DNA of 64,000 bases from Trichoplax adhaerens (taxonomy: Eukaryota > Animalia > Placozoa). The first letter of the stretch is position 1. Every line of letters begins with the position of its first letter. A program made the position numbers and the translations under genes. Of the stretch, positions 1,128-24,920 are shown piece by piece. The stretch covers positions 2,014,987-2,078,986 of the forward strand of contig NW_002060943.1 in assembly GCF_000150275.1 (NCBI RefSeq), in the 5' to 3' direction. The notes below the pieces were generated by a model that had not been told where the DNA came from, did not search any database, and saw only the letters and a list, made by a program, of their open reading frames with translations.

Positions 1128-4100
1128 TTAACCTAAATCTATAACCAAAGCAGAGTTATCATTATCAGCAAGCCACTTGTTGGTTTCAGCCATGGCAGAT
1201 TTGAGAGTTTCCATTAACCCTTCGTATTCATCGTGGCCAATTTTCTTGGCTAAATCGCCAGCGATATCTTCAGACTGAGTAATTATACGATCATTTTCGT
1301 ACAAAGGCTGTAGTAAATTGCTCGTTATACATGTAGAATCTATCAATATACGGAAATATTCACTTTATTCAACTAGTAAAATAAAATAACGAAAAAGTGA
1401 TAAACTACTATATCAAGGTAAGACTTTCAATATCTCTATCATTTAAGAGCTATTTGCTAGCATTGTGCGTAGATTTTTAAGATTTCGTATAAGTAGACTA
1501 TCCCTTACAATGGTGCTTTCTTAGATATTCCAACGCATCTTCGAAGCCTTGTTGACATAATGCTCTAAGAGAGGCCTCATCTGGAGAAAATAAAGCTCTA
1601 GTCGCTCGATGAAGATCGCCTAATGTAAATTTAATCGTTCGTCGAATACAGATATCGCTATTTTCAAAGTCATGAAGCGACACATGGTTAGGACAAATCA
1701 TTCCATCACCGACGAAAGGAGAAATAGTTATTGTTTTCTGAATATCGAAAGGTATAGGATGGTTGTCCGAAATTCCACCGTCTAAATATCGCTAATGATA
1801 AAGCATATAGGCATTACAAGATCATCTAATAAATCAAGTTGATTTTATTGATAATTTCTCTATACTTAGAATTTGGCAAAGTCTACTAACTGAGTAAAGT
1901 AACATTGAGATTTACGTTATAATATAATAGATATCTACGCTTTGCAATATAATATACCAATCTTTTTTTTATTCTACATCTTTTGCAGATACAATGTTAT
2001 AAGTAAATTTATACAACTTAAAATTTTTAATGTATTTCTTACCTCTCCACGATAAAAAGGTGGCACTATACCCGACCAAAAAGGGACAAAACAACTACAA
2101 GCTACACACTGCATACCATTTCCGGAAAAAGAAAGAATTTATCATCTTAATAATATTTATCATAACCTAATTTCATTTACTTCAAGCTATTAGCAAGTTT
2201 ATTACGAATAAATGAGATATTTTTAACTGCATATTATTTCATTTACTATAAATATAAATAAATGGACCTGATTGAACAAAAAGAAAATTCATATAAAATG
2301 AATAAATTGCTTTAAATACGCATGAATTATGAAGGTAGGGATAAACTAGAGTCTATCGATTTTATAATACGCGTACATAACGAAAATTAGATACAAGCTT
2401 AAAAATTAATCCATCATTTAGAGAAATTTACATGTAATCAACAGTCTTGAATGGTACTGTTGTAATATGCTATATCTAAAAATGATCTTGAAATACGACT
2501 ATATGTAACTAGCAGTCTTGAATAGTGCCTTTGTAATACGCTATTTCTAAAAATAACCTTGAGACACGAGCATAAATAATCAGTAGTCTTGAATAAAACC
2601 GTTGTAATATGCTATATCTAAAAATAATCTTGAGATGCAAGTACATATAATCAGTAGTCGTGAATGGTACCGTTGTAATATGCTATATCTAAAAACAATC
2701 TTGAAATATACTATTTACTACTGATATGCAGAAGTACTGTGGCGATGAAAAAGGTAAAAGTTTATTCTAGTAAAGGAAATCCAGTAGTATATTCAAAGCT
2801 ATCATGATTGATGCTTAAAAAATTGATTTCATGTAATTTACATGTAATCAGTAGTCTTATATGGTACTATTGTAATATACTATATCTAAAATGATCCTGG
2901 CATAAATAATCAGTAGTCTTGAATAGTACTGTTGTAATATGCTATATCTAAAAATGATCTTGTGATATACTATTGACCGCTGATATACATATGTAATACG
3001 GTGATGAGAAAAAGTAAAAATTTATTTTAGTAAAGTAAACACAATAATATATTCGAAGCTTTCATGATTGATGCTAAAAAATTAATTTCTGAAATATTGA
3101 ATGTACAGGGACTATAGTACTTGAAGTATTCTATCAAATATGTAATAGTAAGGATAGAACTGTTTTAATTTCTTTTTCAATGTACGGCCTAATAAAAGGA
3201 CCTTGGGCAAAATTAAGTCTACATTCTCCATCAATCGATCTGCATCAGATTAGTAATGATTTTTAGAGTCGATCTACATAGAAGATGTCTATATTATTTC
3301 ACTATAAGTCAAGTAATATCTTTATAGAATCCTGTACAATACTTACATTATATTCTCTCTCCATAAAGCAATCTTTATCAGGTCAGTAACGATTTTAGAG
3401 TCGATTTACATAAAAGATATCTATACGTACTTTCACTAAAAGTCTGGTAATATCTTTTAAGAACTCTATGCAATAATTAATTTATAAGCTCTCTTCATGA
3501 ATCATTCTTCATCGGCTTAGTAATGATTTTTATTTCAATCTATTTATATAGAAGATGAATATATTTACTTCACCAAAGGCTAATAATGCCGCTAAGAGTG
3601 ATAAAGAGGTGATGTGATATTAATTGAAATTTTAGCCGAATTTCAGATTTTTTTAGCATGATTGCGTAATCCTAGAATATGCAGTGGTTTAATTGAAATT
3701 GCGATATGGACATCAACAATCTTTTATTACTTTTTCCCTAGGTCTAAACCTTCGTCATGCCCATTATAACCGATTTTTTTCATGAATAATGCATCTCATC
3801 TTCAAATAAACAAAGTCTAGAGATACGATTTAAAAGATTATAGTCCAGTATTTCCATAAGTATCGCCAAATGTACGTTAAATAGTAATTACTATTGCCTC
3901 TTTACGATTGGATTCTCAAGAAATTATACAATATATTATAATTTAGCATGTAAATGCATGTACAAGATATTATACGCATATTTTTGCCGCAGTTACTCCT
4001 AAAGGTTGAAAATTAATGGGAAATACTATGTATTCCTAACTATAAAATATTATAACTTTAGGATATGATCAAGTTAAAGTATTTTACCTGCTTTAAAAAT

Positions 4101-4565
4101 TATATTACAAACAGATGATGGATGTGATCATATATGCTTTGCTTTTAGCGATAGTTGATTTACCTTAATAAGATCCATCTTTGAGAAGAATTCGCTAATG
4201 AGGATATTTTGTCGATCTCTGGCTCGAGTTAATGATATATGAACTTTATTGTTGGCTAATTGATGAGCATTATCAGGAAATACACGATCTAATGCTTCTT
4301 CAATCAAATGAGGTATGCTAACACGAGGGTGAAAAGCTCCTGTGTAAAAATCTCTAGTCTTCACCCCCATCTCGATACAATATCGGCTTAATTCTGGTAA
4401 TTTATCGGGACATACCACTAATGCTGATGCTGTGATTGCACCACCAGATGCTCCACTAGCTGAATTTAAATTTTTGATTATATCTGGCGCATATTCCACA
4501 AATCCAGCTGCTACACCCAGTTGATATACAGACAAAAATCCACCACCAGAAAATGCTAGATTCAT
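1128..4565 (-). CDS. Patatin-like phospholipase / adipose triglyceride lipase-like (PNPLA2/3/4 family). Exons about 4565-4164, 2108-2043, 1791-1509, 1339-1128
   Basis: Oxyanion loop FSGGGFL, nucleophile GASGG (GxSxG), SCFVPFWSGIVPP and catalytic YLDGG. GT-AG boundaries are phase-consistent. The last exon (ORF 1128-1346) joins in frame via T|gtaag...tag|AT but is less certain than the rest. Confidence 0.9.
2430..3090. repeat. Intronic minisatellite, ~70-bp unit (taatcagtagtcttgaatggtactgttgtaatatgctatatctaaaaa...), about 6 copies, with a larger duplicated block (~2650-2835 vs ~2905-3090)
   Basis: Unit recurs at about 2435, 2506, 2577, 2648, 2845 and 2907. Confidence 0.85.
3230..3580. repeat. 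Degenerate tandem repeat, 3 copies of ~130 bp
   Basis: A (t/c)agtaatgatttttagagtcgat...catagaagat-like motif recurs at about 3250, 3385 and 3518. Confidence 0.7.
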
Positions 4566-5647: not shown

Positions 5648-8600
5648 TTATAGTTTACTTTGTAATTTCGTTAACTCCGCGACCCGTTTTCTTAGTTCTC
5701 GTCTTAATATTTTACCACTTGCTGACTTAGGAATAATATCAGCAAATTCAATACCACCTCGTAAATATTTATGAGGGCTAACTTTACTCTTAACAAATTC
5801 AATAATCTCTTCCTTTGATATTTCGCTTTTCTTTACTATAAACGCCATCGGCAACTCTCCTGCTTCTAAATCCGGTCGACCAATAACGGCAGCGTCGGCA
5901 ATTTTTTCATTAGTAAGTAACAGTGCTTCTAGTTCGGCAGGAGGCACCTAGTTTGGTAAATATTAGGTTGGATCACGTTAGATTGACCATATTTTTCCCT
6001 TGTTACATCATATTTGTAATTCAAGTAGCAGCATTCAATATATTCTATTTGTTAGACCTGAAAGCCTTTGTACTTAATTAATTCCTTCAAGCGATCGACA
6101 ATGTAAAAATACCCATCTTCATCGTAATATGCAATATCACCAGTGTGCAACCAGCCATCTTTATCAATGGTTAATGCAGTAGCTTTTTCATTTCGAAAGT
6201 ATCCTTTCATAACCTGAGGCCCACGTATACATAATTCTCCTCTTTCATGCTGTGGTAGTGATTTTCCATCCTCATCTACAACCTATTACCCCAAAAAGAA
6301 AATGATTATATAGATGATCAATTTCTCAATCAAATTTATTAAATTAATAAAACGCAGGATATGACTTCCAGTAGTTATAGATAATATAACAAGGTAAAAT
6401 TATCTGTAGAGATTCTAGACAAACCTTAGCTTTCGTATTAGGAGCACAAACTCCAATGGCTCCAAATTTCTTCTCGTCAGCTCTTTTGACTAAATGAGAG
6501 ATAGGGCTAAGTTCCGTCATACCATAAGCTGTAATAAGCAAATAAAGTTGAGGCTACATCAGATACATTAAGTAAAATGTTTCTCATTAAAAGGTACGAA
6601 ATTAAATACCTTGGCGTAATAATGATATCTTTGCTCGCTCTTTAACACTTTGACTGAGATCTGAGTCAAGTGGAGCTGCCCCACATATGGTTTCCTGCAG
6701 ACTAGATAAATCAAATTTTTCTACCAAAGGATCCTTAGCTAAAAATACGTATAATGGTGGGACTAGGCAGGCATACTTGATCTGATGCGTAGCGATGAAT
6801 CGGTATAAAAAGTTGTATAATTAATAGTTGTAGAAAGGAGAATTAAGAGTTATTTTGTTTATACGATGTTATCTATTTTCAGTTTTTAGATACCTTATAT
6901 TTTTGAATGGATCCCAAAAAGAGCTCCGGTTCAAATCTTTCTAAGCTTATTAGGTGCGCACCAGTTCTTAGCCCAGATAAAAGGATAACAACTAATCCAT
7001 AGATATGATACCAAGGCAGTAATCCTAAGGACGGGCGGTCATTATCGAAAGCTTTGATATCTGGATGCATCAGTTGCAGAGAATTTGCAATTAGATTGTA
7101 ATGTGTTAGCATAACACCTAAAACAGTGAAAGAGATAGATGGGTTAGAGTTTTCTAATAGGAAATCTTTCAATATATTCATGCCCATTCAGATCATAAAG
7201 CAATGGCTCAGAGCTTATGTACAATACTAAGCATTTGTAGTTTTATAATCTGTAATGATTAGGTAATGATATAATTTTACATGCGAATAATTCTAAACCT
7301 ATATACGAATACATTGCATGTATATGATAGCACAATTAAGGAATAGCCTAATACCTTTAGGGATGCCAGTTGTCCCGCTAGAATAAGGAATTACAACAGT
7401 ATCTTGCATTGGTCGGATTGTGTCATCCATTTTAAAGAATGAGCCATCATCTTTCATTAGCTCGTTAAAGGACTTTAATCCCTTAACGTGACCAAACACA
7501 TAAGCGCCTCTTAATCGTCTGCGAAATGCCAAAGACAGATTTTAATAGGTTGTGAATGTTAATATGGCAATTATGTTACGCCTATAATCCTACGAGTAAC
7601 CTATGAATCTTAATGGGGTAGTTTAAATTTATTACTTACATTATTCAGTTTAGTGATATTAACAGCAGCTCTATTAGCCTAATTTAAATTATCCTTTTAT
7701 TAAATAAATGACTGTCACAAAACTATTTAAGAATTTATACCTGATTTGTACACGATTAAGAAATTGTATGCATATTGCTATTGCTTTGTAAGACTTTAGT
7801 ATATAACGTTAGATTGAATATACTCATTATCAATACTTACATCCTGGAGGTAACTTTCAAGGCTACATCGGCGTTGGTTGGATATGCAAACAAATACTGT
7901 GCAGACGATAACTTCATCTGCTTGGTCACTTCATCAGCAGTATATAAGGGGTTGATAGTTGTGACGATACCGCCAATGGCTGTAACCGCTAACAAGAGAA
8001 CAGCATATTGAGGATGATTTGGGCTGAAGAGAGCTAAAATATCGCCTTTCTTAAATCCTAGTCGTCGCAATGCGGAACCACATTGGCGTATTTGTAAGCC
8101 CAAATCTCTATAAGACAGCGTTTGTGCAGTGGCAGCATGCGTCTGTAGGTATAAATGGATTAATTTTACGAATGAGAAGAAGAAATATACCTCGTATGAT
8201 TACTATGCAATGCATATATAAATGTTATATGCACATATTATAAACTGTAGAATGATGAATTAGATGATTTACGTGTAATACATAGTCCAAGGTACACTGC
8301 AATACTAATCGTATGTATTAAGTGAAATAATTCATGTAATATTTTATGGCTGTAATGGCAAAGCCATAGAGAATATTTTCAGTATTATCACAGTTAACTT
8401 ATATTGTTAGCCTTTGCATTTTTAGTTAAGATTTAGTCATAGACAGTAGTACAATGGATAAGTAGTATGTAGAGATTACAGGTGGAGTAGATCCATATTG
8501 ATTGCGATACAAGCAGTAAAGCAATCGTTGACAGTATATACTGAGATCCAAATGTATAATAAAGTTTGCTACTAGTAGTAATTAATAAATTAAACGTGTA

Positions 8601-12799: not shown

Positions 12800-15700
12800 A
12801 TGTCTGATATTGAAGAATCACAAGAGGAATGTACACAATCTCCGCCAGAGGAATGTGCAGGTACTACGTAGTGCATTTATACTGAACTGTCTGAGTACTT
12901 ACACTTTGCAAACAGTAAACGATGCTCATTTCGTTAAGGTTAAGAGCAAGGTTTGCAAAAATCAGTCTACTACATGTTGATTAGAGAGGACATGACAGTA
13001 CGTGATTAGCAGTTTAATAATTATCATTACAACAGGATATTTACTATAATATCATGTGGCAGAATCATGACAACATGATATACACTGTATATTATACAGT
13101 AGAGTCATGATTTCTACTAGAAAAATTCTACAATAGGCTGTTATGAGAGATAATTATGGCTTACCTAAATTAGGTTACATTAACCATCAATCATTTGTTA
13201 ATAAATTGAATACGATTTTAATATCCTAAACTGTTCGATCATGTATATAGTAAAGTGTGTGATCTTACGCACTGATCATTAACTAAATTACTACATAAAA
13301 GGTTTTCGCTATCGACTGCTCACTGGTAAATTAACCACTGTCCAATAAAATAATCTCTACGTTATTTCTTGATGGTAGATGGCCACAATTAAAATAGACA
13401 TGGACTACTAGATGCACTTACCTAGTAATCCATGGTATAGACTACAGTTTTGTACTTCGCAGGAGCGGTTTTTTCCTCAACTGATTACGTATTTTATTGA
13501 TAGATCAATCATCAACAGTTGAAGCTTCGGAATTAACTGCAGAAGATACAAGCGATAAATTTGATGACAATGAACAACCTCTAGAAGAAGAACAGGTATC
13601 TTCCGAAGAAGCAGCGATTACTGAAGAACAAATAAATGAAGAACATGATGTATCCGAAGAAGTAGTCGAGGTTGAAGCGGAAGAGGAATCCCCAAATGAA
13701 GATTTAACGCAAACAGACGTTGCTGGAGAATTGGAACAACCTGTTCCTCAAGATTCTTGTGAAACTGCAACTTCTGTTGAACAATCGGATGAACATCAAC
13801 AGAACGGCACAGTATCGAGTGAGTTCGTAGCTACTGAAGAAGAGAACAATAATGAAGCTACTGAAATAACTAACGAAGATCAATCACCAACGGATCAAGT
13901 TAGTACTGAAGATTTAACAGAAAATAATTTATCGGATGAACCACTAGTAGTCTCTGAAGAGTCACAGGTTCAAGAACTTTCTGAAGATTCGACCGAGGAA
14001 CAAATTCCCTCTGAATCTGCAAGGGCAGATATTGAAGAGAAATTACCTGTCGAAGAAACAACTGAGGCTGTAAGCAATGAAGAGCAAATATCTTCAATGG
14101 AATCAACCGAAGATGTCAAAATTGACGAGGTATCTGATGAAGAAAAAGCTGTAGAAGATGAGGGAAAACATCTGTTGAAGATGCTGATGAGATCCTAAAA
14201 AAAAATGAAGAAACTGCAGAACAGATACCGGATGAAGAAACAGTTGTACAAGTCGTACAAGCTGAAGAACAAATAACATCAGAAGAGCCAGCTGAAATTG
14301 TAGAAGTTGAAGAACAAATAACATCAGAAGAACCAGCTGAAATCGTAGAAGCTGAAGAACAGATAGTTTCAGAAGAATCAACTGAAATAGTAGAAGCTGA
14401 AGAACAAATAACTTCACAAGAACCAGCTGAAGTTGTAGAAGCTGAAGAACAAATAACTTCACAAGAACCAGCTGAAATTGTAGAAGCTGAAGAACAAATA
14501 ACTTCGGAAGAACCAGCTGAAATTGTAGAAACTGAAGAACAAGTAACTTCCGAAGAACCAGTTGAAGCTATAGAAGCAGAAGAACAGATACCTAGTGAAA
14601 TAGGTGAAACCGCAGAACAAATATCTTCGGAAGAGTCAACTGAAGCTGTGGAAACTAAAGGACAGCTATCTGGTGATGAAGTAACCAACATTTTGGAGCC
14701 AACACTAGCTAAAGAATCAGAAGAAACTACAGAAATCGAAGAACAAGCATCTGGTAAAGAAACATCTGAAGCTGCAGAAGACAAAAAGCAGACTCCATCA
14801 TCCGAAGCCATAGAAGATCAAGAACAGATATCCTATGAAGAAACTATTGAAGCTACCTCACTAGAAAGTGAGGTAGCTGTTGAGGAATTGCATGAAAATC
14901 TTCAATCTGGAGAACAGGTACACGTATCTAGTGAAGAAACAACAGAGGTTGTGGAATCTGAAGAACAAACACCTAAGGAGGAATTAACCGAAGCTGCAGA
15001 AACTGAAGAACAGATAGCCGTATCTAGTGAAGAAATAACTGAAGCTGTGGAAGCTGAAGAACCTAAGGAACCAGTTGAGGTTGCAGAGACTGAAGAACAG
15101 GTACCTGTATCTAGCGAAGAAATAACTGAAGTTGTGGAACCTAAAAATCAAACACCTGAGAAAGAATCCGTTGAAACTGCAGAAATTGAAGAGCAGGTAC
15201 CTGTATCTAGAGGAGAAACGATTGAAGTTGTGGAACTTGAAGAACAGACACCTATGGAAGAATCAGCTGAGGCTGCAGAATTTGAAGAACAAGTACATGC
15301 AAAAGAATCAACTGAAGCTGTTAAAATTAAGGAACAGTTGTATGATGAAGGAGCTGCTGAAGAACCAGCTGAAGAGGTAGAACTTTGCGAAGAGACAGCT
15401 CCTGCTAAATCATCTGAGGTACTCGACTCTGAAGAACAAATACTTCCTAAAGGAGCCATTGAAGATCCAGTTATGGTTACAAGTGAGATACTGCCTGAGG
15501 ATAAGCAAACCAGTCAAGAAGTCACAACAGTGGCTGGTGATAACAAGCAAATGGAAGTAAACCACATCAATGCTGAAGAAAAAGTGGAGACTTCATCTCG
15601 TCAGCAGTTATCAGACGTAAATAGAAATGATAATGATAAAGAAGTGACAAGAAATGAAAAGGCAGACTCATTGGTCGTAGGTAAAAAGTTATTATTTAAA

Positions 15701-16510
15701 AACGTATAATAAATGTAAGCAGATAGCAGAATTATTATTTTACTAGCTTGCATGATAACTATCCATATCATTTTAAAATGTATAAGAGCCAATCTACGTA
15801 GCAATTTAAGTTTTTTAATGAATTCACGACTTTAAATCACTAAACTTAGAATAAAATTGAACTTTTTCATTTAGTCCTTATAGTAAGCATCTTAGTTTCT
15901 AGTTTCTAAAAGCCTCTACCGTTTTCCATAACAATTACATAATACGTGTAAATACAGACTTTAGCGGTGTTTCAGGATTTATTGAAGGCAGATTTATTGG
16001 ATAAAAAAGGCTACATTCTTAATCGTTTTTCTATTTGCAGCAAAAGAATCAAACTCTGCTGATCACGAGATGACTACTACGATATCAAAAGCTAATAAAG
16101 AGCACTCACCTCAATCTATAACAACAGCAGGTAGATTATCTAGAATTTATAACATTTAGAAATTGCTATTACATAGAGTAATATTGCTGTCGCACTTCCA
16201 ATTGAAGGCTTTTACATTTACTGTTATAAGATGATTCTTTTTTGTTGATATTAATTCTCCGATGCTAGAAATCTGAATTATTTTGGGGGGCTTTTTAAGT
16301 TATTTATGTCCTAAGTATGTCACTATAACAATTTACTAACACTTATGATATTGTCTGTTACTACTCTCAAATCTCGAAGATTCAGAAGCGAAGAATACAG
16401 ATTCACAGGAAGCAGGTGCTGCTGGTTACCAAAAACGAGAGAAAACACCCCGCAAACCTAGAAGAAAATCCATTAAGAAAGCATTTATAAAATTATTTAA
16501 AAGATCGTAG
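12800..16510 (+). CDS. Glu-rich, low-complexity repeat protein of unknown function (copy 1). Exons about 12800-12860, 13504-15680, 16041-16130, 16380-16510, with one apparent frameshift near 14165
   Basis: MSDIEESQEEC exon splices (phase 1) into ORF 13497-14198. The Glu-rich frame resumes shifted at about 14165 (KTSVEDADEILKKNEETAEQ) and runs to the donor near 15680. The last exon ends RKPRRKSIKKAFIKLFKRS*. Confidence 0.75.
14261..14620 (+). repeat. Coding 45-nt (15-aa) tandem repeat AEEQITS(E/Q)EPAEIVE, about 7-8 copies
   Basis: gctgaagaacaaataacttcacaagaaccagctgaaattgtagaa repeated head to tail. Confidence 0.92.
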
Positions 16511-18767
16511 TAGAAATCTTTCGTTTCCTTTAGCATCATAAAAATTTTCTGTAACCGTAGAATTTGACAAATGTTTATTTTGATAATATACCTCCTAATT
16601 AGGTGCTTAAAAATTCAGGATTATATAAACTATTTTATCGGCTGATCATATTAATTAATACATATACGACTAGGATAATCTATTTAAATTAGGTTTTGTG
16701 ATTTCATTCTTGAAGCAAACTGGAGATAATAATATCATTACGTACGTAAGGTTCAAGACAATTTAAAAATTGTGAGTGAATGAACGATTACGATTTAGTA
16801 TTACGCGTATTTTATTATATGCAACCGAGTATAAGGTGTTGTTTTTTAATTATTGCCTTTTATCAAAAGACGAATACTCGTAACGTAAGAATTAAGTTGG
16901 AAATACTACAACAACTAACGATTTTCTTTACTATTAAGCTAGTACTATCTTTTTAAATGCAAATATGCAATGATGAAATCAATAAATGTGATTGAGCGGT
17001 GCCAATGTGGCATTTATGATGATTCTGTTGTAATGTTGATAGCCTCGGAATTTTTTGAACCTTTAACTGAAAAAATTGAACATGAGAGATTTATAGTTCT
17101 GCGATGGGTGGACCAGTAGCGAAGTACTGCATCTTAGAATTTTTGAATTATTAATAGAAAAGTGAATGTAAACTGACACTACTAATCATAACCAAGCTGC
17201 AATTGAGGTTAACCATTGCATGATACGCGTTTCTGGTTGCTTTACAGGAAATTAAACTCATGCTCGTATGGTAGTATAATGATACATAGTGCTGGGTACC
17301 AGATTCTAAATATTAATAGGACCCATATACAAGTGTGATCATACCGTCACACTAGCACTGTAGTCTAAGTTTTTAATTATGCAATCTTCTGAAAAAGAAA
17401 ACAGTCTTAATAAAGTTCTATGCTTTGCTAATACACTGTCTCTACATTTGCTCGAGAACTTATTATAAATTCAAAAGTGAGTAGCTAATACAGCTTCGAT
17501 CAATCTAGTAATCAAAAATAACCATGAACATAACTTTAGAATCACGATTTTATTATACTTTGGAGCAATTCTAATTAAATCATCGCTACTAATCATACAA
17601 GTTAAGACAGACTATCTTGATATTCTTTTCTAAATTAAGTAGGATATTTCATCATGAATAAATTTCTATTGATACATTTAGCAAATCAGATAGTATATTT
17701 ACCAAATACATGTATTGCTTAACGGTTAAATTACTCCCTACGATGTATAATACTTAGTAAAAGTCAAATCTCATCTACTAATGATAAATCATGATACGGA
17801 TAAAGTAGTACGGTAGAGCAGACAATAACCTCACTACTAGATAACGTCTATAGCAATTAGCAAACTAAATTAATCAAAAATTATTACAGTTACATTTATG
17901 TTGTAGCTATTGTACTCTATATATTTCGTAAATACAATAGGTAGTGATACAATGCAATTTTATGGATGAGAATTCTAGAAATTAACTTTCATTAGACTGT
18001 AAACTAAATCATAGTACGATTTCTAAGTGAAGGTTAAATAGAACAACTTGCGAGCATTGCCTATAAGATAAGGTTGGAAGAGTCTATCCATAGTTAACAA
18101 CTGTCAATAACAAGAAAATATCGTCCTGGAGATATTCTGATAAAAAGATGCGTAGGTACAAGCTAAATACTGGTAGCTCTAAAATCTACTGTTTAAAATG
18201 TACGTAAGAACTTGTAATTAGGACTTTAAATGTAATAGTAAAATTTGGATGACAATATAATAATCGTTATGGCTTATCGGCTATCGTTTTTCTTTCTTTC
18301 TCTCTAATATTTCAAGCTACAGCTGAAATGTTGTCAACTAATTAATTTCCGATTTCTTTGCCTTCAATTAGAACAACTGCTTTCTTGTTCAGCTTTACTT
18401 AGATTTTCTGTTAATCCATTACAAAGTAGTTAATTTTTCAGTGCTTTTGCATTAATATCCTAATAGTAAAGCACCTATCTTTCGAAGAAATCAAATACTA
18501 CACTATTTAAAGGTTGAAATACTCTCGTATACCAGTAAGAATTCGTGAGACTTTTAGAAAAATTAATAAAGATAGAACATAATCCAAATTGAATCTTCCA
18601 TATCCTGATAGTAGTCACTGATTAAGTATACAAGTACACTACTTTGCGTTTTCAAATTAAGATCAATTTAGCATTAAAGGGTCATTTCGACTAACTATAT
18701 TTGTAGTTATTGCTAGTAGTGTATAAGATTGTCAATTATTATAAAAGTGATTACTTCGTTTTCTTTA

Positions 18768-21178
18768 TTAAACTGAGAAACCATTCACAATTCCATCTTG
18801 GCCGTTTGTTAAGTCTTCTGGATCATTACATTCGTGTTCTTTATTTGTCATTTTCTCTCTTATAGTAGAGAAGTAACGAAGCATATTAGTACGCACATCT
18901 TCGGATTGCTCAGACCTCATTTCCTGCTCAACTTGACTTAGGCAGTCATTTAAAATCTTTTTTTGCATTCTCAATTCTTCGTTTCGCTTTGTCAACTTCT
19001 CATTTTTATTTTGCAAATCTCTCAACTGGCGAGCCTGTTCCTTTGATCTTCTCATTAATTTAGTATTATTTTTCTCTGTATCCTCTCTACTTACATTTCT
19101 GGTATATTGACGTTGTAACTTAACATCTGGCTTTTGAAGAGATTGAAAAATTTGTATCAAATCTTCTGGTATCAAAATTTGGTTACGTGTTAAGAAGGCA
19201 ATCATCTCAGAATTGAATTTAGGTAAAGATGGGTAGATTGCTGTATAAAAGGTCACTAAATCGTGTCCTCTCATTTTTAATATCACTTTAGGATAAGATA
19301 AGGTACCCATAACACCATTCCCAAAAGACACTTCTTCTTTACATTTTATTAACTCATAAACCTCTTCTAAATCCTCTCGCTTCCTGATAAGATTATTTTT
19401 GTCACTCCCTAAGTTATCGATAGCTTTGATAACTTTTCGAGCAAGATCTATTAGCTCCTTAAGAACATCTTTGCACTTTGAACGTTCACGGATTTTCTTT
19501 GCGTAATCTAATAAATTACCTTCGCTATGGACAAGTTTACATGTTGTTTCGAAATCTTCTATCGTCGATTCCTTTTCTGATGTTTCTGTCTTATTTTCAA
19601 GATTAGTAAGCAGTGATTCCAATTTTTTAACGCACTCTTCAAATTTATTCTTGAATTTGATAAATTTTTCTACCGCATCAATCAGTTTTTTGCTTACGAC
19701 GTCGATAATTATTTGCAATACTTTAGTTAGTTGAGCAGCCCTTCCTTTCTCGAAAAAACCAGATAAAAGATCGGGATGTTCTGTTACTGAATGATTATTG
19801 ATTTCGCTTTTCATCTCTTCCGCTTTGTTTTTGCTTCTCAAATAATAATATATATGTATCGGATCATAAAGATAGTTTTCTATGCTATATCTCTTTAAGC
19901 ATCGAATGTTATATAATTTGGGATCTTCTCTATTATCGTTATCAACTAACCCAAATATAAATTCCCTTAAACTCTGATCTTCATCGCTCTCATTTACGCA
20001 AGATTCCACAATGTTTTCCACATAAGCTCTACATGACTTTTCAATCATCCTGCTACCACTCTCATCTGCAGAGTCTGGCCTTTTTTTGTGCTTGCCAACG
20101 GCCATAAATAGCAATGGGTAAGTACTTGCGATTAAACGTTCCCTAGCTAATTTATCTTGAATCATTGTGTAAAATTTCTTATCATCTCGAGCTTCAACGA
20201 AGACCATTCGAAAGGGTAAATTGACATGGACAAATTCTGCTGTTAATAACTGTATTGCCTGCCGCTTACTTGCAGCTTTTTCAATCTTGATCTCTTTTGT
20301 CATATTATTTTCTGTCATAACATAGATACAGTCTTTTGGGGCAAGGCTCACTGTTGTAGGGGAATGAGTAGTCATGATAACCTGAATGCCAAGCTTGGAT
20401 ATCAATTTAGTTTTAATAGTTTCAATGACTTCTTGAACTAAGCTTGGGTGAAGATGGGCATCCGGTTCATCTAGTAAAATGATTCCGCTATCATTTGCTT
20501 TTGCCAAGTTTTTACTTCCAAATAGCCATAGTAGTGATAACAATTCTAACTGTTCCCCAGAAGATAGTTGAACTTGAATAACGGGTATGTTAAAAGGCAC
20601 TCGTTTTTGACATATTAATTGACCATCTTCCATTATATATACATCAAACTTAAATCCATTTTTATATAAATGCTTATTGACATCGTAAAGTGTGTTATCC
20701 ATTTGCAAAAAATATCGTACGTAATCTTTCCATGAACCATAAGTCTTTATCGGTTGTCCCATTTCCTCTCTTAAGTACTGTTCTAGCTTTTCTTTAAGTT
20801 GACTTTCAATTTCTGGTATATCCGTCAATCCTAATTTCTTCGTGGCATTGCAAGCCTTGGGTACGACTTTTTTATAGAGTTCTTCGTGATCATGGCTCTC
20901 CATTTGATATTGTCCACCATAAATATGACACTTTTTTATATCCATTAATACATTATTAAAGTTTTGTTCAAAATCATCGGAAGATTGCTTAGCTAAGTTC
21001 ATAGTAGAATTCTCATTTTTGTCTTTTTGTTCATTAAAGGAATTAGTAGCCAAATTTTGCTCTTCTGAGTTAGAATTGAGGTAACAGATTTGCGAAACGT
21101 TTCTTCGATATAACAAGATAGGACGAGCTAATGATTTATTGTGTATATGTTCACCCTCTGATAACATGAAACGAAGCA
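18768..21178 (-). CDS. Intronless ABC-type (AAA_15/AAA_21-like) ATPase fused to a TOPRIM (DUF4435/OLD-like) nuclease domain, plus a C-terminal coiled-coil-like region. 5' end lost in the assembly gap
   Basis: Signature LSSGEQ (20550-20567), Walker B/D-loop ILLDEPDAHLHP, H-switch IMTTHSP, TOPRIM VFVEARDD and GLVDND, and RYSIENYLYDP. The frame stays open upstream of Met 21167 (L-R-F-M) into the Ns. No Walker A is visible in the available part. Confidence 0.85.
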
Positions 21179-21228
21179 NNNNNNNNNNNNNNNNNNNNNN
21201 NNNNNNNNNNNNNNNNNNNNNNNNNNNN
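21179..21228. other. Assembly gap (50 N)
   Basis: Run of N. Confidence 1.
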
Positions 21229-21886
21229 GTAACATCGAAATCGATTTATTTATTTACCACGTAGTTTATATTTCTCCTGTATGATTTAACCGTGCTTGCC
21301 GTCATATTATAACGCAATGACTACAGTAGCTGTGTATCTAATTAGTTTGTTATTGATTCTGTGTCGGAATGCGGCGGTTGGATCACTCAATATCTAAAAT
21401 GTAGTATGAGTGAAGGCTCTACGGTAGTTTATGTAATGGGTGTTTATTTCCTATTTTGTCTCACGGCTTGTAGCCCTTACAGAGAAGAACAGCTAAATAC
21501 ATGTGTTCCCTTACACGCGGTCCTTGCCTTAAATAATGACCTACTTATCGCAGCCGATCTACTTTAGGCTTAACCAAGACCGTATACCTTTACTGTAACT
21601 GATTACTATATACTGACATCCCAGCTAGTATCGTAATCGATATGAACAGCACATACACTAATATATAGTTATCTAACATTGCAATACCTTATTCCATATC
21701 GCTAGTAACAGAAGATCTACAACTACATCTAAACTATCATTAGTACCGTATCCTACATATAATAATACCTAGGCTAAATTTATTGATAAAATTATATGAA
21801 ACCAAACCTGATTTATTTGTTTGCTTCGTAGCTTATATTTTTCCTGTTTGATTTAATCATACTTACTGTTATTTTATTCCATACAG

Positions 21887-24254
21887 AACAGATACCGGAT
21901 GAAGAAACAGCTGAAGTTGTCAAAGTTGAAGAAGAAGTACATTCAGAAGAATCGGCTGAAGCTACAGAAACGAAAGAGCATAAATCTAGTGAAGAAGCAA
22001 CCGAAATAGTAAAAGTTGCGGAACCTTCGAAAGAATTAACTGAAGCTACAGAAGCGGAAGAGTATATATCTGATGAAGCAACTGAAATTGTAAAAGCTGA
22101 AGAACAAGCACCTTCGGAAGAATCAACTGAAGCTACAGAAATTAAAGAGCATGCATCCGATGAAGAAGCAGAAGAATCGGCTGAAGTCGTACAAGCAGAA
22201 GAACAAATAACATCATAAGAACCAGCTGAAATTGTAGAAGCTGAAGAACAAATAACTTCACAAGAACCAACTGAAACCTTAGAAGCTGAAGAACGAATAA
22301 CTTCAGAAGAACCAGCTGAAATTGTAAAAGCTGAAGAACAAATGATTTCACAAGAACCAGCTGAAATTGTAGAAGCTGAAGAACAAATAAGTTCAGAAGA
22401 GCCAGTTGAAGTTGTAGAAGCAGAAGAACAGATACCTAGTGAAATAGACGAAACCACAGAACAAATACCTTCAGAAGAGTCAGCTGAAGCTGTAGAAACC
22501 GAAGGACAGCTATCTGGTGATGAAGTAACCAACATTTCGGTGCCAACACTAGCTAAAGAATCAGAAGAAACTACAGAAATCGAAGTACAAGCAAATGATA
22601 AAGAAATACCTGAAGCTGCAGAAGACAAAAAGCAGACTCCATCATCCGAAGCCATAGAAGATCAAGAACAGATATCCTATGAAGAAACGATTAAAGCTAC
22701 AGAAAGTGAGGTAGCTGCTGAGGAATTGCATGAAAATCTTCAATCTGGAGAACAGGTACCCGTATCTAGTGAACTAACAACGGAAGTTGTGGAACCTGAA
22801 GAACAAGCGCATAAGGAGGAATTAACCGAAGCTGCAGAAACTGAAGAACAGATAGCTGTATCTAGTGGAGAAATAACTGAAGCTGTGGAAGCTGAAGAAC
22901 CTAAGGAACCAGTTGAGGTTGCAGAGACTGAAGAAATGGTACCTGTATCTAGTAAAGAAATAGCTGCAGTTGTGGCACCTGAAGACCAAACACCTGAGAA
23001 AGAATCTGTTGAAATTATAGAAAATGAAGAACAGACACCTACGGAAGAATCAATTGAGACTGCAGAAATTGAAGAACAAGTACATACCAAAGAATCAGCT
23101 GAAGTTATTGAGATTAAGGAACAATTGCATGATGAAGGAGCTACTGAAGAACCAGCTGAAGAGGTAGAACTTAGTGAAGAAACAGCTCCTGCAAAATCGT
23201 CTGAGGTGATAGACTCTGAAGAACAAACACTTCCTAAAGAAGCCATTGAAGAGCCAGTCATGGTTACAAGTGAGATACAGCCTGAGGATGAGCAAGGCAG
23301 TCAAGAAGTGACAACGGTGGCTGATAATAACAAACAAATGGAAGTAAACGAAATTAAGGCTGAAGAAACAGTTGAGACTTCATCTCGTCAGCAGTTATCA
23401 GACGTAAATAGTAATGATAATGACAAAGAAGTGACAATAAATGGAAAGGCAGACTCATTGGTCGTAGGTAAAAAATTATTATTTAAGACCGTATAATGAA
23501 ATTTGAGCAGATAGTAGAATTACTATTTTACTAGCTTGTATGATAACTATCGATGTCGTTTTAAAAAGAATAAGGGTCAATGTAGAAATTTTAAGTCTTG
23601 ATAGCTTCACGACTTTACGTCACTAAACTTAGAATGAAATTGAACCTTTTTTTCGTTTAGTCCTCGTATTAAAAATTTTAGTTTCTAAAAATCTCTACAG
23701 CTCTTCACAATAATACGTGTAAACACAGACTTTAGCGGTGTTTTAGGCTTCAATGAAGGCAGATATGTAGGATAAAAAATGGCTACATTCTTAATCGTTT
23801 ATCTATTAGTAGCAAAAGAATCACAGTCTGCAGATCACAAGACAGCTACCACGATATCAAAAGCTAATAAAGAGCACTCACCTCAATCTGTGGCAACAGC
23901 AGGTAGATTATCTAGAATTTATAACATTTAGAAATTGCTATTACGTAAAGTAACATTACTGTCGCCTTTCCGATTGAAGGCTTTTACACTCACTCTTATA
24001 AGATGATTCTATTTTGTTGATGTCAATTCTCAGATGCTAGAAATCTGAATTATTTATGTTCTATGAAACTTCACTAACAAACACTTATGATATTGTCTGT
24101 CACTGCTCTTAAATCATGAAGATTCGAGAGAGAAGAATACAGATTCACAGGAATCAGGTGCTACTGGTTACCAAAAACGAGAGAAAACACCCGCAAATCT
24201 AGAAGAAAATCCATTAAGAAAGCATTTGTAAAATTATTTAAAAGATCGCAATAG
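21887..24254 (+). pseudogene. Degenerate partial duplicate of the Glu-rich protein gene (copy 2)
   Basis: Colinear with 14220-16510 including introns; the homology continues in the 3' flank to the gap at 24870. In-frame TAA at 22216-22218 and a 1-nt deletion at about 24190 (CCC vs CCCC) in the last exon. Confidence 0.75.
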
Positions 24255-24870
24255 AAGTCTTTCGCTTGGTTTAGTATCATAAAAATTTTCTGTAGTTGTA
24301 GAATTTGACAAATGTTTATTTTGATAATATACCGTCTAATTAGGTACTAAAAAAATTTAGGATGATATTATATAAATTATTTTATCGGCTGATTACATTA
24401 ATATGGATACGACCAGGATAGTTTATTTATTAATTAATTAATATGCAATGGTTTGTGATTTTCATTCTAAAAGCGGATTGAAGGTATTAATATCATTAAC
24501 TACGTAAGGTTCAAGACAATTTAACAATTATAAGCAAATGAATAATTAAGATTTTAATAATATTGTAATACACGCATTTGAGTATAGTTGCTTTTTAATT
24601 ATCGCCTTTTATCGAAAGATGAATACTCGTAGCGTAAGGATTAAGTTGGGATACCACAACTACTAACGGATTTCTTTACTATAAAGCTAGTAGCATCTTT
24701 TTTGAATGCAATCAATAAATGTGATTGAGCGATGCCAATGTGGCATTTATGATAATTCTATACTAGCGTTGATGGATCTCGGAAATCTTGAATCTTTGAT
24801 AGGAAAAAGTTGAGCCCGAGCACCTTATGCATAAGTTATGATCAAGAAGTTTATAGCTCTACGATGCATG

Positions 24871-24920
24871 NNNNNNNNNNNNNNNNNNNNNNNNNNNNNN
24901 NNNNNNNNNNNNNNNNNNNN
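24871..24920. other. Assembly gap (50 N)
   Basis: Run of N. Confidence 1.

Follow-up and report, generated by a model that had tools for sequence, protein, structure and literature searches.

A PARIS-like ATPase-TOPRIM gene with a Ulp1-related N-terminal module in the genome of the placozoan Trichoplax adhaerens

On the minus strand of a 64,000-nucleotide stretch of the Trichoplax adhaerens genome (assembly GCF_000150275.1, contig NW_002060943.1, positions 2,014,987 to 2,078,986, or C1414:2014987-2078986 in our numbering; hereafter, the window), a long open frame encodes part of an ABC ATPase followed by a TOPRIM nuclease domain, and here we describe this gene, its missing 5′ end, its relatives and its possible function. 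Searches of the assembly covered all 1414 contigs (105.6 Mb). As assembled, the frame holds 802 sense codons, a length expected with a chance of about 1e-27 at the local base composition. Its first in-frame ATG lies at 21167, so that the open reading frame (ORF) proper (18768..21167) encodes 799 amino acids, and upstream of this ATG the frame stays open for three further sense codons, up to 21178. The parts of the gene, from its 5′ to its 3′ side, are as follows (dN/dS denotes the ratio of nonsynonymous to synonymous substitutions relative to the closest paralogue).

21231..22411, minus strand: overlap with the unplaced contig C919, 99.6% identical to its bases 1-1178
21179..21228, no strand: assembly gap of 50 N, standing for at least 2.3 kb (the remainder of C919 plus about 120 codons with Walker A)
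18768..21178, minus strand: open frame of the gene as assembled, 802 sense codons and a TAA stop
20238..21178, minus strand: C-terminal half of the ABC ATPase, residues 1 to about 310 (Pfam, PDB profile, Foldseek)
19788..20240, minus strand: TOPRIM core, residues 310-460, with E325, D329, D409, D411 and E430 (conservation, AriB fold match)
19398..19679, minus strand: four-helix-bundle insert of about 95-110 residues in the AriB-like domain (alignment, model, dN/dS 0.54)
19128..19397, minus strand: C-terminal sheet and helices of the AriB-like domain, with a conserved YPK...RGHDL motif (dN/dS 0.24)
18834..19124, minus strand: long charged helical tail, residues 682-778, probably a coiled coil (model helices 682-751 and 756-778; dN/dS 1.08)
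18764..18770, minus strand: TAA stop (18768-18770) and overlapping AATAAA (18764-18769)

The initial annotation of this DNA, made from the letters alone, had described an uninterrupted 2.4-kb ORF with six motifs in a given order, and all six were located in that order: LSSGEQ (20550-20567), ILLDEPDAHLHP (20445-20480), IMTTHSP (20358-20378), VFVEARDD (20181-20204), GLVDND (19935-19952) and RYSIENYLYDP (19860-19892). Its other local observations proved correct as well: an AATAAA overlaps the stop codon, the GC content of the ORF (32-34%) matches the AT richness of the rest of the window, and the 799-aa protein has no stretch of transmembrane-grade hydrophobicity (maximum Kyte-Doolittle 19-residue mean, 1.08). 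The ORF is not the whole gene, since it ends at the 50-N gap, a Walker A motif is absent everywhere in the 64-kb window, and the Pfam AAA_15 match covers positions 149-372 only of the 374 in the profile, with the AAA_21 match likewise confined to the C-terminal part of its profile. The expression ‘intact nuclease’ thus holds for the open frame and the catalytic motifs, but the window by itself does not establish it for the whole gene, because the Walker A region falls within the gap.

Much of the 5′ end was found elsewhere in the assembly. TRIADDRAFT_57780 (P0002, 1014 aa), the protein nearest to that of the window, extends about 230 residues further upstream, with the P-loop ITGKNGSGKT among them, and a whole-assembly search with it led to an unplaced contig of 3129 bp (G000:C919, L010:1-3129). 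C919 begins in the piece across the gap, where it overlaps the window, and reaches 1951 bp into the gap itself. An open frame of 322 codons at its bases 2164-3129 encodes the N-terminus of the gene, and the last 45 residues of this frame are 62% identical to the N-terminus of P0002. The overlap, together with a frame homologous to P0002, therefore places the continuation of the gene across the gap. Judging by the paralogue, about 120 codons, Walker A among them, would lie unsequenced between the end of C919 and position 21178, and the whole gene, which shows no trace of an intron, would comprise about 1245 codons. Walker A is present in the paralogues P0002 and TRIADDRAFT_54103. The annotation can be corrected to that extent: the gene is cut by a gap that C919 largely fills, and this contig can be placed there.

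The assembled ATPase half contains a helical insert, the signature LSSGEQ, Walker B with the catalytic glutamate (LLDEPD) and the H-loop (TTHSP). Pfam AAA_21 matches it at 3.9e-13 (50.6 bits; cut-off 27) and AAA_15 at 9.7e-8 (32.4 bits; cut-off 32.1), and a profile search of the PDB matched PtuA and AriA. In an alignment of 56 homologues, the signature residues S202, G204 and E205, the Walker B residues D233 and E234, and the H-loop H268 are invariant or nearly so. With the AlphaFold model of the 799-aa protein (mean predicted local distance difference test, pLDDT, 80.7), ATPase matches prevailed in the full-length Foldseek search, which returned PtuA, AriA, OLD (6p74) and the ATPase-TOPRIM effector of retron Eco8. 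Among the PADLOC models, fused AriAB ranked first (2.4e-18), followed by ATPase-Toprim_I-B (9e-15) and AriA (1.7e-14), which bears out the proposed kinship with bacterial defence proteins; the PtuA, GajA and Old matches are restricted to the ATPase, those of GajA and Old (at 1e-11) to residues 221-304.

Because the ATPase dominated the full-length structural search, residues 310-690 were folded separately, giving a model with a pLDDT of 88.9 and a predicted template modelling score of 0.88. The top Foldseek match of this domain was AriB (8ux9_A, E 1.6e-3, probability 1.0). An exhaustive VIA-align comparison against 48,161 chains again placed AriB first (8v46_D; Z 10.7, rmsd 4.2 over 203 residues, model residues 7-368 on chain residues 17-307), as did a second VIA-align run, in which model residues 6-369 were aligned; the two runs superposed 203-209 residues of a chain of about 306 at an rmsd of 4.2-4.7. 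Next came OLD from Burkholderia and Xanthomonas, whose C-terminal regions reached Z 6.2-6.4, and the remaining high-scoring structures match only the four-helix bundle (model residues 188-281), a generic arrangement. The five acidic residues E325, D329, D409, D411 and E430, initially described as retained, are indeed invariant or near-invariant across the 56 homologues, and their pattern, E-x3-D...D-x-D...E, corresponds, in a comparison at the level of the pattern, to the published AriB residues E26, D30, D88, E90 and E122 (PMC11464382). A homodimer prediction for the TOPRIM domain scored 0.01, which argues neither for nor against dimerization.

The proposed architecture, a soluble ABC ATPase joined to a TOPRIM domain, is thus upheld by the Pfam matches of the one part and the AriB-like fold of the other, and the suggested Foldseek comparison with AriB, GajA and OLD returned a TOPRIM fold with AriB on top. 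In sequence, the domain is collinear with the C-terminal domains of bacterial ATPase fusions of about 580 aa from many phyla, which lack the helical insert; DUF4435 matches 16 of the 31 C-terminal domains of the bacterial relatives, and the ESM Atlas neighbours of the domain are DUF4435 clusters. A profile search had been expected to return AAA_21 or AAA_15 together with DUF4435 or an OLD TOPRIM; the two ATPase families were matched, DUF4435 and PF20469 (OLD-like_TOPRIM) were not, the latter neither in the protein nor in the genome, whereas control genomes scored with it. Based on the fold and the transitive homology, we therefore filed the protein as PARIS-like, placing it with the single-chain AriAB proteins within the OLD superfamily, rather than as a Pfam-defined DUF4435 member or an OLD/GajA nuclease. 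Of the composite OLD/PARIS/GajA-like label given at first, the PARIS/AriB part stands (Z 10.7) and the OLD/GajA part does not (Z 6.4, PF20469 unmatched).

The gene has paralogues on the contigs C1409 and C1412, among them the following two.

C1412:844469-848932 (L094:4470-8933): TRIADDRAFT_54103, an intact frame of 1488 aa with four N-terminal Ulp1/C48 units, Walker A, ATPase and TOPRIM
C1409:5954453-5958184 (L012:2454-6185): TRIADDRAFT_57780, a single continuous frame with four in-frame stops

TRIADDRAFT_54103 shares with the window gene the order of ATPase, TOPRIM and helical insert and about 43% identity over window residues 81-548, but differs from it in having four Ulp1/C48 units and a sequenced Walker A and in lacking the long charged tail of the window type. 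Its N-terminus is recognized as Peptidase_C48 (1.4e-21, three matched stretches) and RickCE_cat (1.5e-10), with Cys-Gly at the catalytic position in three of the four units and Cys-Ser (CS) in the first, and no other protein with such a four-C48 N-terminus was found among 5.8 billion proteins within the searched length range. Homology to these C48 units (E 9e-15, 1e-8 and 3e-8) extends to the 322 N-terminal codons of the window gene, which retain the His-Trp and the Asp, with a leucine in place of the catalytic cysteine, which leaves the triad incomplete; the Pfam C48 model gives no score on this module. The same Leu-for-Cys change is found in the C1409 copy. Given the leucine at this position, the module probably serves for binding rather than as a protease.

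The four stops of TRIADDRAFT_57780 replace Trp, Cys, Trp and Gln where the intact copies allow comparison, and both its published model and that of Trichoplax sp. H2 pass them off as introns, so that the published annotation, which conceals four stop codons, calls for correction. C1412 additionally carries TRIADDRAFT_54102 (one in-frame stop) and degraded fragments. Together, these copies depict a birth-and-death family in the Trichoplax genome, and no ATPase-TOPRIM genes beyond the placozoan family were found in this genome.

To what selection the window copy has been subject was estimated against the C1409 copy by the Nei-Gojobori method over 780 codons, with the stops of the latter read as X. 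The two differ by a dS of 0.47 and a dN of 0.18 (overall dN/dS, 0.39), and the ratio varies along the protein, from 0.30 in the ATPase, 0.29 in the TOPRIM core and 0.24 in the C-terminal sheet to 0.54 in the helical insert and 1.08 in the tail, which is thus fast-evolving. Coding identity between the copies is 80%, as opposed to 67.6%, with many gaps, in their shared 3′ flank. The 1124 known codons of the window gene contain no stop, whereas neutral simulation of as many codons yields about 11 stops at 5% divergence (0.05 substitutions/site) and about 38 at half the observed dS. It follows that the window copy was kept open by selection, which has held the frame until very recently at least.

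The best protein matches come from Trichoplax adhaerens and Trichoplax sp. H2. Beyond these, 219 relatives from many bacterial phyla were confirmed among the first 600 pattern matches, and among the 120 best proteins Placozoa and one rotifer are the only eukaryotes. In two quick maximum-likelihood trees, unrooted and supported by Shimodaira-Hasegawa-like approximate likelihood ratio tests (SH-aLRT) only, the placozoan sequences form one clade (support 100 in both). It is nested in a ‘long-form’ clade (99-100) whose other members are Parachlamydiaceae proteins, metagenome and Logan proteins, a gammaproteobacterial metagenome-assembled genome and the long-branched rotifer protein; the forms of about 580 aa, of Bacteroidota type, branch outside it. 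The sister of the placozoan clade is settled by neither tree. For the horizontal acquisition proposed at the outset, the phylogeny therefore supports the nesting of the placozoan genes among bacteria and does not fix sister group, donor or direction. Since bacterial breadth contrasts with a patchy eukaryotic presence, the sequence comparisons favour a bacterial origin, possibly by way of bacteria living inside eukaryotic cells.

Long-form members share long N-terminal extensions. The long-form proteins of Parachlamydiaceae (Protochlamydia, Parachlamydia) resemble the window family in this respect and in belonging to the same clade, but they are bacterial, 27-31% identical to the window protein, and carry other add-ons (an F-box; OTU by database name). 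Such add-ons were found among P0019, P0024 and P0026-P0029: an F-box (5e-7) in the Protochlamydia sp. W-9 protein P0019, a P. amoebophila relative that UniRef names ‘OTU domain-containing’, and leucine-rich repeats (LRRs) in several JGI metagenome proteins. The F-box, OTU and LRR add-ons of these bacterial relatives may hint at host-directed or host-derived functions. One metagenomic relative (L095:532-5100, Ga0075163_10041827) is a single ORF of 1522 aa, 39% identical to the window protein, in whose N-terminal extension of 780 aa Pfam names no domain, C48 and OTU included.

On the 3′ side, 18.7 kb of N-free sequence joins the ORF to host exons that are split by non-coding DNA.

4131-4565, 5651-5947 and 6882-7187, minus strand: host exons, namely a patatin-like phospholipase exon and two AMP-binding (acyl-CoA synthetase/luciferase-type) gene exons

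Contiguity with intron-containing host sequence, host-like base composition and embedding in an animal genome, all part of the initial description, are confirmed by these patatin and AMP-binding exons, to which N-free sequence of the same contig leads, by the GC content and by the paralogues on large scaffolds. Beyond the coding sequence, the window gene and the C1409 copy have about 930 bp of 3′ flank in common. The host exons, the GC content, the paralogues and the co-duplicated flank make contamination or a symbiont origin very unlikely, and, as judged from this sequence context, the animal genome itself harbours the gene.

The same region contains a direct repeat of 2.9 kb (14209-17079 and 22050-24813; 82% identity), the copies of which carry a very acidic, Glu-rich repeat gene in plus-strand ORFs at 13497-15709 and 22342-23496, on either side of the ATPase-TOPRIM gene. 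Its second copy lies in the piece 21229-24870, which is bounded by gaps on both sides, a second gap of 50 N being at 24871-24920. Long Ser-rich ORFs opposite the acidic gene are antisense artefacts. The acidic gene has no copy elsewhere in the genome and is confined to the window locus, for which reason a conserved partnership with the ATPase-TOPRIM gene was rejected.

Taken together, these observations are probably best explained by a nuclear, apparently intronless Trichoplax gene that belongs to a placozoan family of intact and decayed copies at no fewer than three loci and descends from bacterial fused AriA-AriB proteins. Several points weigh against this explanation. The DUF4435 model (PF14491) finds no match in the window protein, in its separate domain or in the genome, and a sequence profile of the domain misses AriB among the PDB chains, giving chance-level matches only, so that the protein is linked to AriB through structure and transitively. 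With Walker A and about 120 codons hidden in the gap, ATP binding by the window copy is a prediction, and nothing comparable to the helical insert or the tail occurs in the characterized PARIS systems. The window gene and its closest paralogue, a pseudogene, sit on branches of equal length, so that selection may be relaxed in this subfamily. Finally, substrate, trigger and immune role are put forward here purely by analogy.

That decay has already reached the window gene itself, leaving an open frame as the remnant of a copy that was recently inactivated, damaged at its 5′ end, unexpressed or dead as an ATPase, seems unlikely to us, even though its nearest paralogue, TRIADDRAFT_57780, has four in-frame stops, the C1412 cluster includes degraded fragments, the sister branches are equal in length, the Ulp1-like unit lacks its Cys, the Walker A region is hidden in the gap and the tail has a dN/dS of about 1. 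Against such a history stand the absence of stops from 1124 codons, where about 11 would be expected at as little as 5% neutral divergence, the retention of all catalytic motifs, and a dN/dS of 0.24-0.30 in the ATPase and TOPRIM parts that was obtained in spite of a pseudogene as the comparison partner. We regard as rather improbable an ancient vertical inheritance within eukaryotes, or a transfer from eukaryotes to Chlamydiae, in place of acquisition by a placozoan from a bacterium. The unrooted tree with its unsettled placozoan sister, the rotifer protein within the long-form clade and the eukaryote-type add-ons of Parachlamydiaceae (the F-box of P0019 and the UniRef name ‘OTU domain-containing’) would allow for it, and a preprint argues for Asgard-derived inheritance of some OLD-like genes (10.64898/2026.08.18.745644). 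The bacterial breadth of the family (219 confirmed relatives of the first 600 pattern matches, many phyla), its restriction to Placozoa and one rotifer among the 120 best proteins, the position of the short bacterial forms outside the long-form clade and the intronless state of the gene all speak against such an inheritance or transfer.

The nature of the nuclease could also be questioned, in that the protein might be a canonical DNA nuclease of OLD/GajA type (class 1 or 2), as the labelling in that preprint would have it, instead of one of PARIS type. PADLOC does match GajA and Old at 1e-11, the full-length model resembles OLD 6p74 and the retron Eco8 effector, the OLD C-terminal regions reach Z 6.2-6.4, and the preprint reports OLD-like genes in Placozoa (10.64898/2026.08.18.745644). 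The PADLOC matches are, however, limited to ATPase residues 221-304, PF20469 is matched neither in the protein nor in the genome, AriB aligns across nearly its whole chain at Z 10.7 compared to 6.4 for OLD, the relatives carry DUF4435, and there is no helicase partner among the nearby ORFs of at least 80 aa; we thus consider this assignment improbable indeed. Contaminant or symbiont DNA, or a mis-joined assembly, is scarcely credible. Trichoplax is known to harbour intracellular bacteria (PMC3641634), and the gene adjoins a gap, with the next piece of the contig bounded by gaps; nevertheless, the sequence on the 3′ side is free of gaps for 21 kb and contains host exons, the GC content of 32-34% is like that of the surroundings, C919 is independent evidence, at 99.6% identity, that the 5′ part belongs with the host piece that follows, paralogues and the co-duplicated non-coding flank lie on scaffolds of 6-13 Mb, and relatives are annotated in Trichoplax sp. 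H2.

If the window gene is indeed a PARIS-like descendant maintained in the animal, a mechanism can be modelled on PARIS (PMC9122126, PMC11464382, PMC12409363). The predicted protein of about 1245 aa would comprise, in this order, the Ulp1/C48-like module, the ABC ATPase, the AriB-type TOPRIM domain with its helical-bundle insert and the coiled-coil tail. By analogy, an ATPase dimer would restrain the nuclease until a trigger binds, possibly one that is read through the Ulp1-derived N-terminal module or the coiled coil. Candidate surfaces for reading the trigger or for assembly are the fast-evolving tail, the helical insert and the Cys-less Ulp1-like module. Upon trigger binding, ATP-dependent rearrangement would release the TOPRIM domains or let them pair, and these may cleave tRNA, if AriB-like, or DNA, if OLD-like, by a two-metal mechanism. 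Infected cells could in this way cease translation or die, which would serve as protection from viruses or intracellular bacteria.

Going further, we offer as a tentative possibility, which we would not call the likely one, that placozoans acquired a bacterial abortive-infection nuclease of PARIS type and made of it a new class of sensor-effector in animal innate immunity, and that the window gene is a working, hitherto unannotated member of its birth-and-death family. The fused Ulp1-like modules, partly active and partly Cys-less, would then read ubiquitin-like modifiers or the pathogen factors that tamper with these, so that sensing of an intracellular bacterium or virus would lead straight to cleavage of tRNA or DNA, gated by ATP. 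To our knowledge, few bacterial defence modules have animal counterparts, among them cGAS-STING, viperin, TIR and gasdermin. A PARIS-type ATPase-TOPRIM nuclease under selection in a very simple animal would be a new addition to these shared modules, and its fusion with a ubiquitin-like protease would tie the nuclease to ubiquitin-like signalling, with which we know of no characterized PARIS or OLD system being linked. The family also constitutes a tractable case of gene flow among intracellular bacteria, rotifers and placozoans.

With regard to earlier reports, a literature search for PARIS-type genes in eukaryotes found no paper, and the locus tags of the family members gave no literature match. 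A preprint of August 2026 (Maaroufi 2026, 10.64898/2026.08.18.745644) describes intronless, transcribed ‘OLD-like’ genes of 577-844 aa in Placozoa and other aquatic eukaryotes, found by DELTA-BLAST with GajA and OLD and interpreted by analogy with these, and argues that part of the eukaryotic genes are of Asgard-derived inheritance. Because no other ATPase-TOPRIM genes were found in the genome, the placozoan genes of the preprint probably belong to the family of the window gene, so that the family would not be reported here for the first time; in the text available, the preprint is silent on an AriB-type nuclease domain, on a fusion to Ulp1-like modules, on the helical insert, on pseudogenes and on the window copy.

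Among the characterized systems, the OLD family (P2 Old, the class 1 enzyme Thermus OLD and the class 2 enzyme Gabija GajA) resembles the window gene in combining an ABC ATPase that contains a helical insert with a C-terminal two-metal TOPRIM domain. It differs from the window gene in that PF20469 leaves the latter unmatched, in that the fold is nearer to AriB, and in the extra domains; no GajB/UvrD-like helicase was found among the ORFs of at least 80 aa in window positions 1-24000, an exon-level search not having been made. PARIS pairs the ABC ATPase AriA with AriB, a DUF4435 TOPRIM tRNase, and the likeness to it, above all to its single-chain AriAB fusions, is closer: an ABC ATPase of AAA_15/AAA_21 type precedes a TOPRIM domain whose top fold match is AriB (Z 10.7), the acidic residues follow the pattern E-x3-D...D-x-D/E...E, AriAB is the best PADLOC model, and the bacterial kin are ATPase-DUF4435 fusions of about 580 aa. 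What sets the window gene apart from PARIS is that it is a nuclear gene of an animal, unscored by the Pfam DUF4435 model, to which a Ulp1/C48-like N-terminal module, a helical-bundle insert of about 100 residues and a coiled-coil tail of similar length (about 100 residues) have been added.

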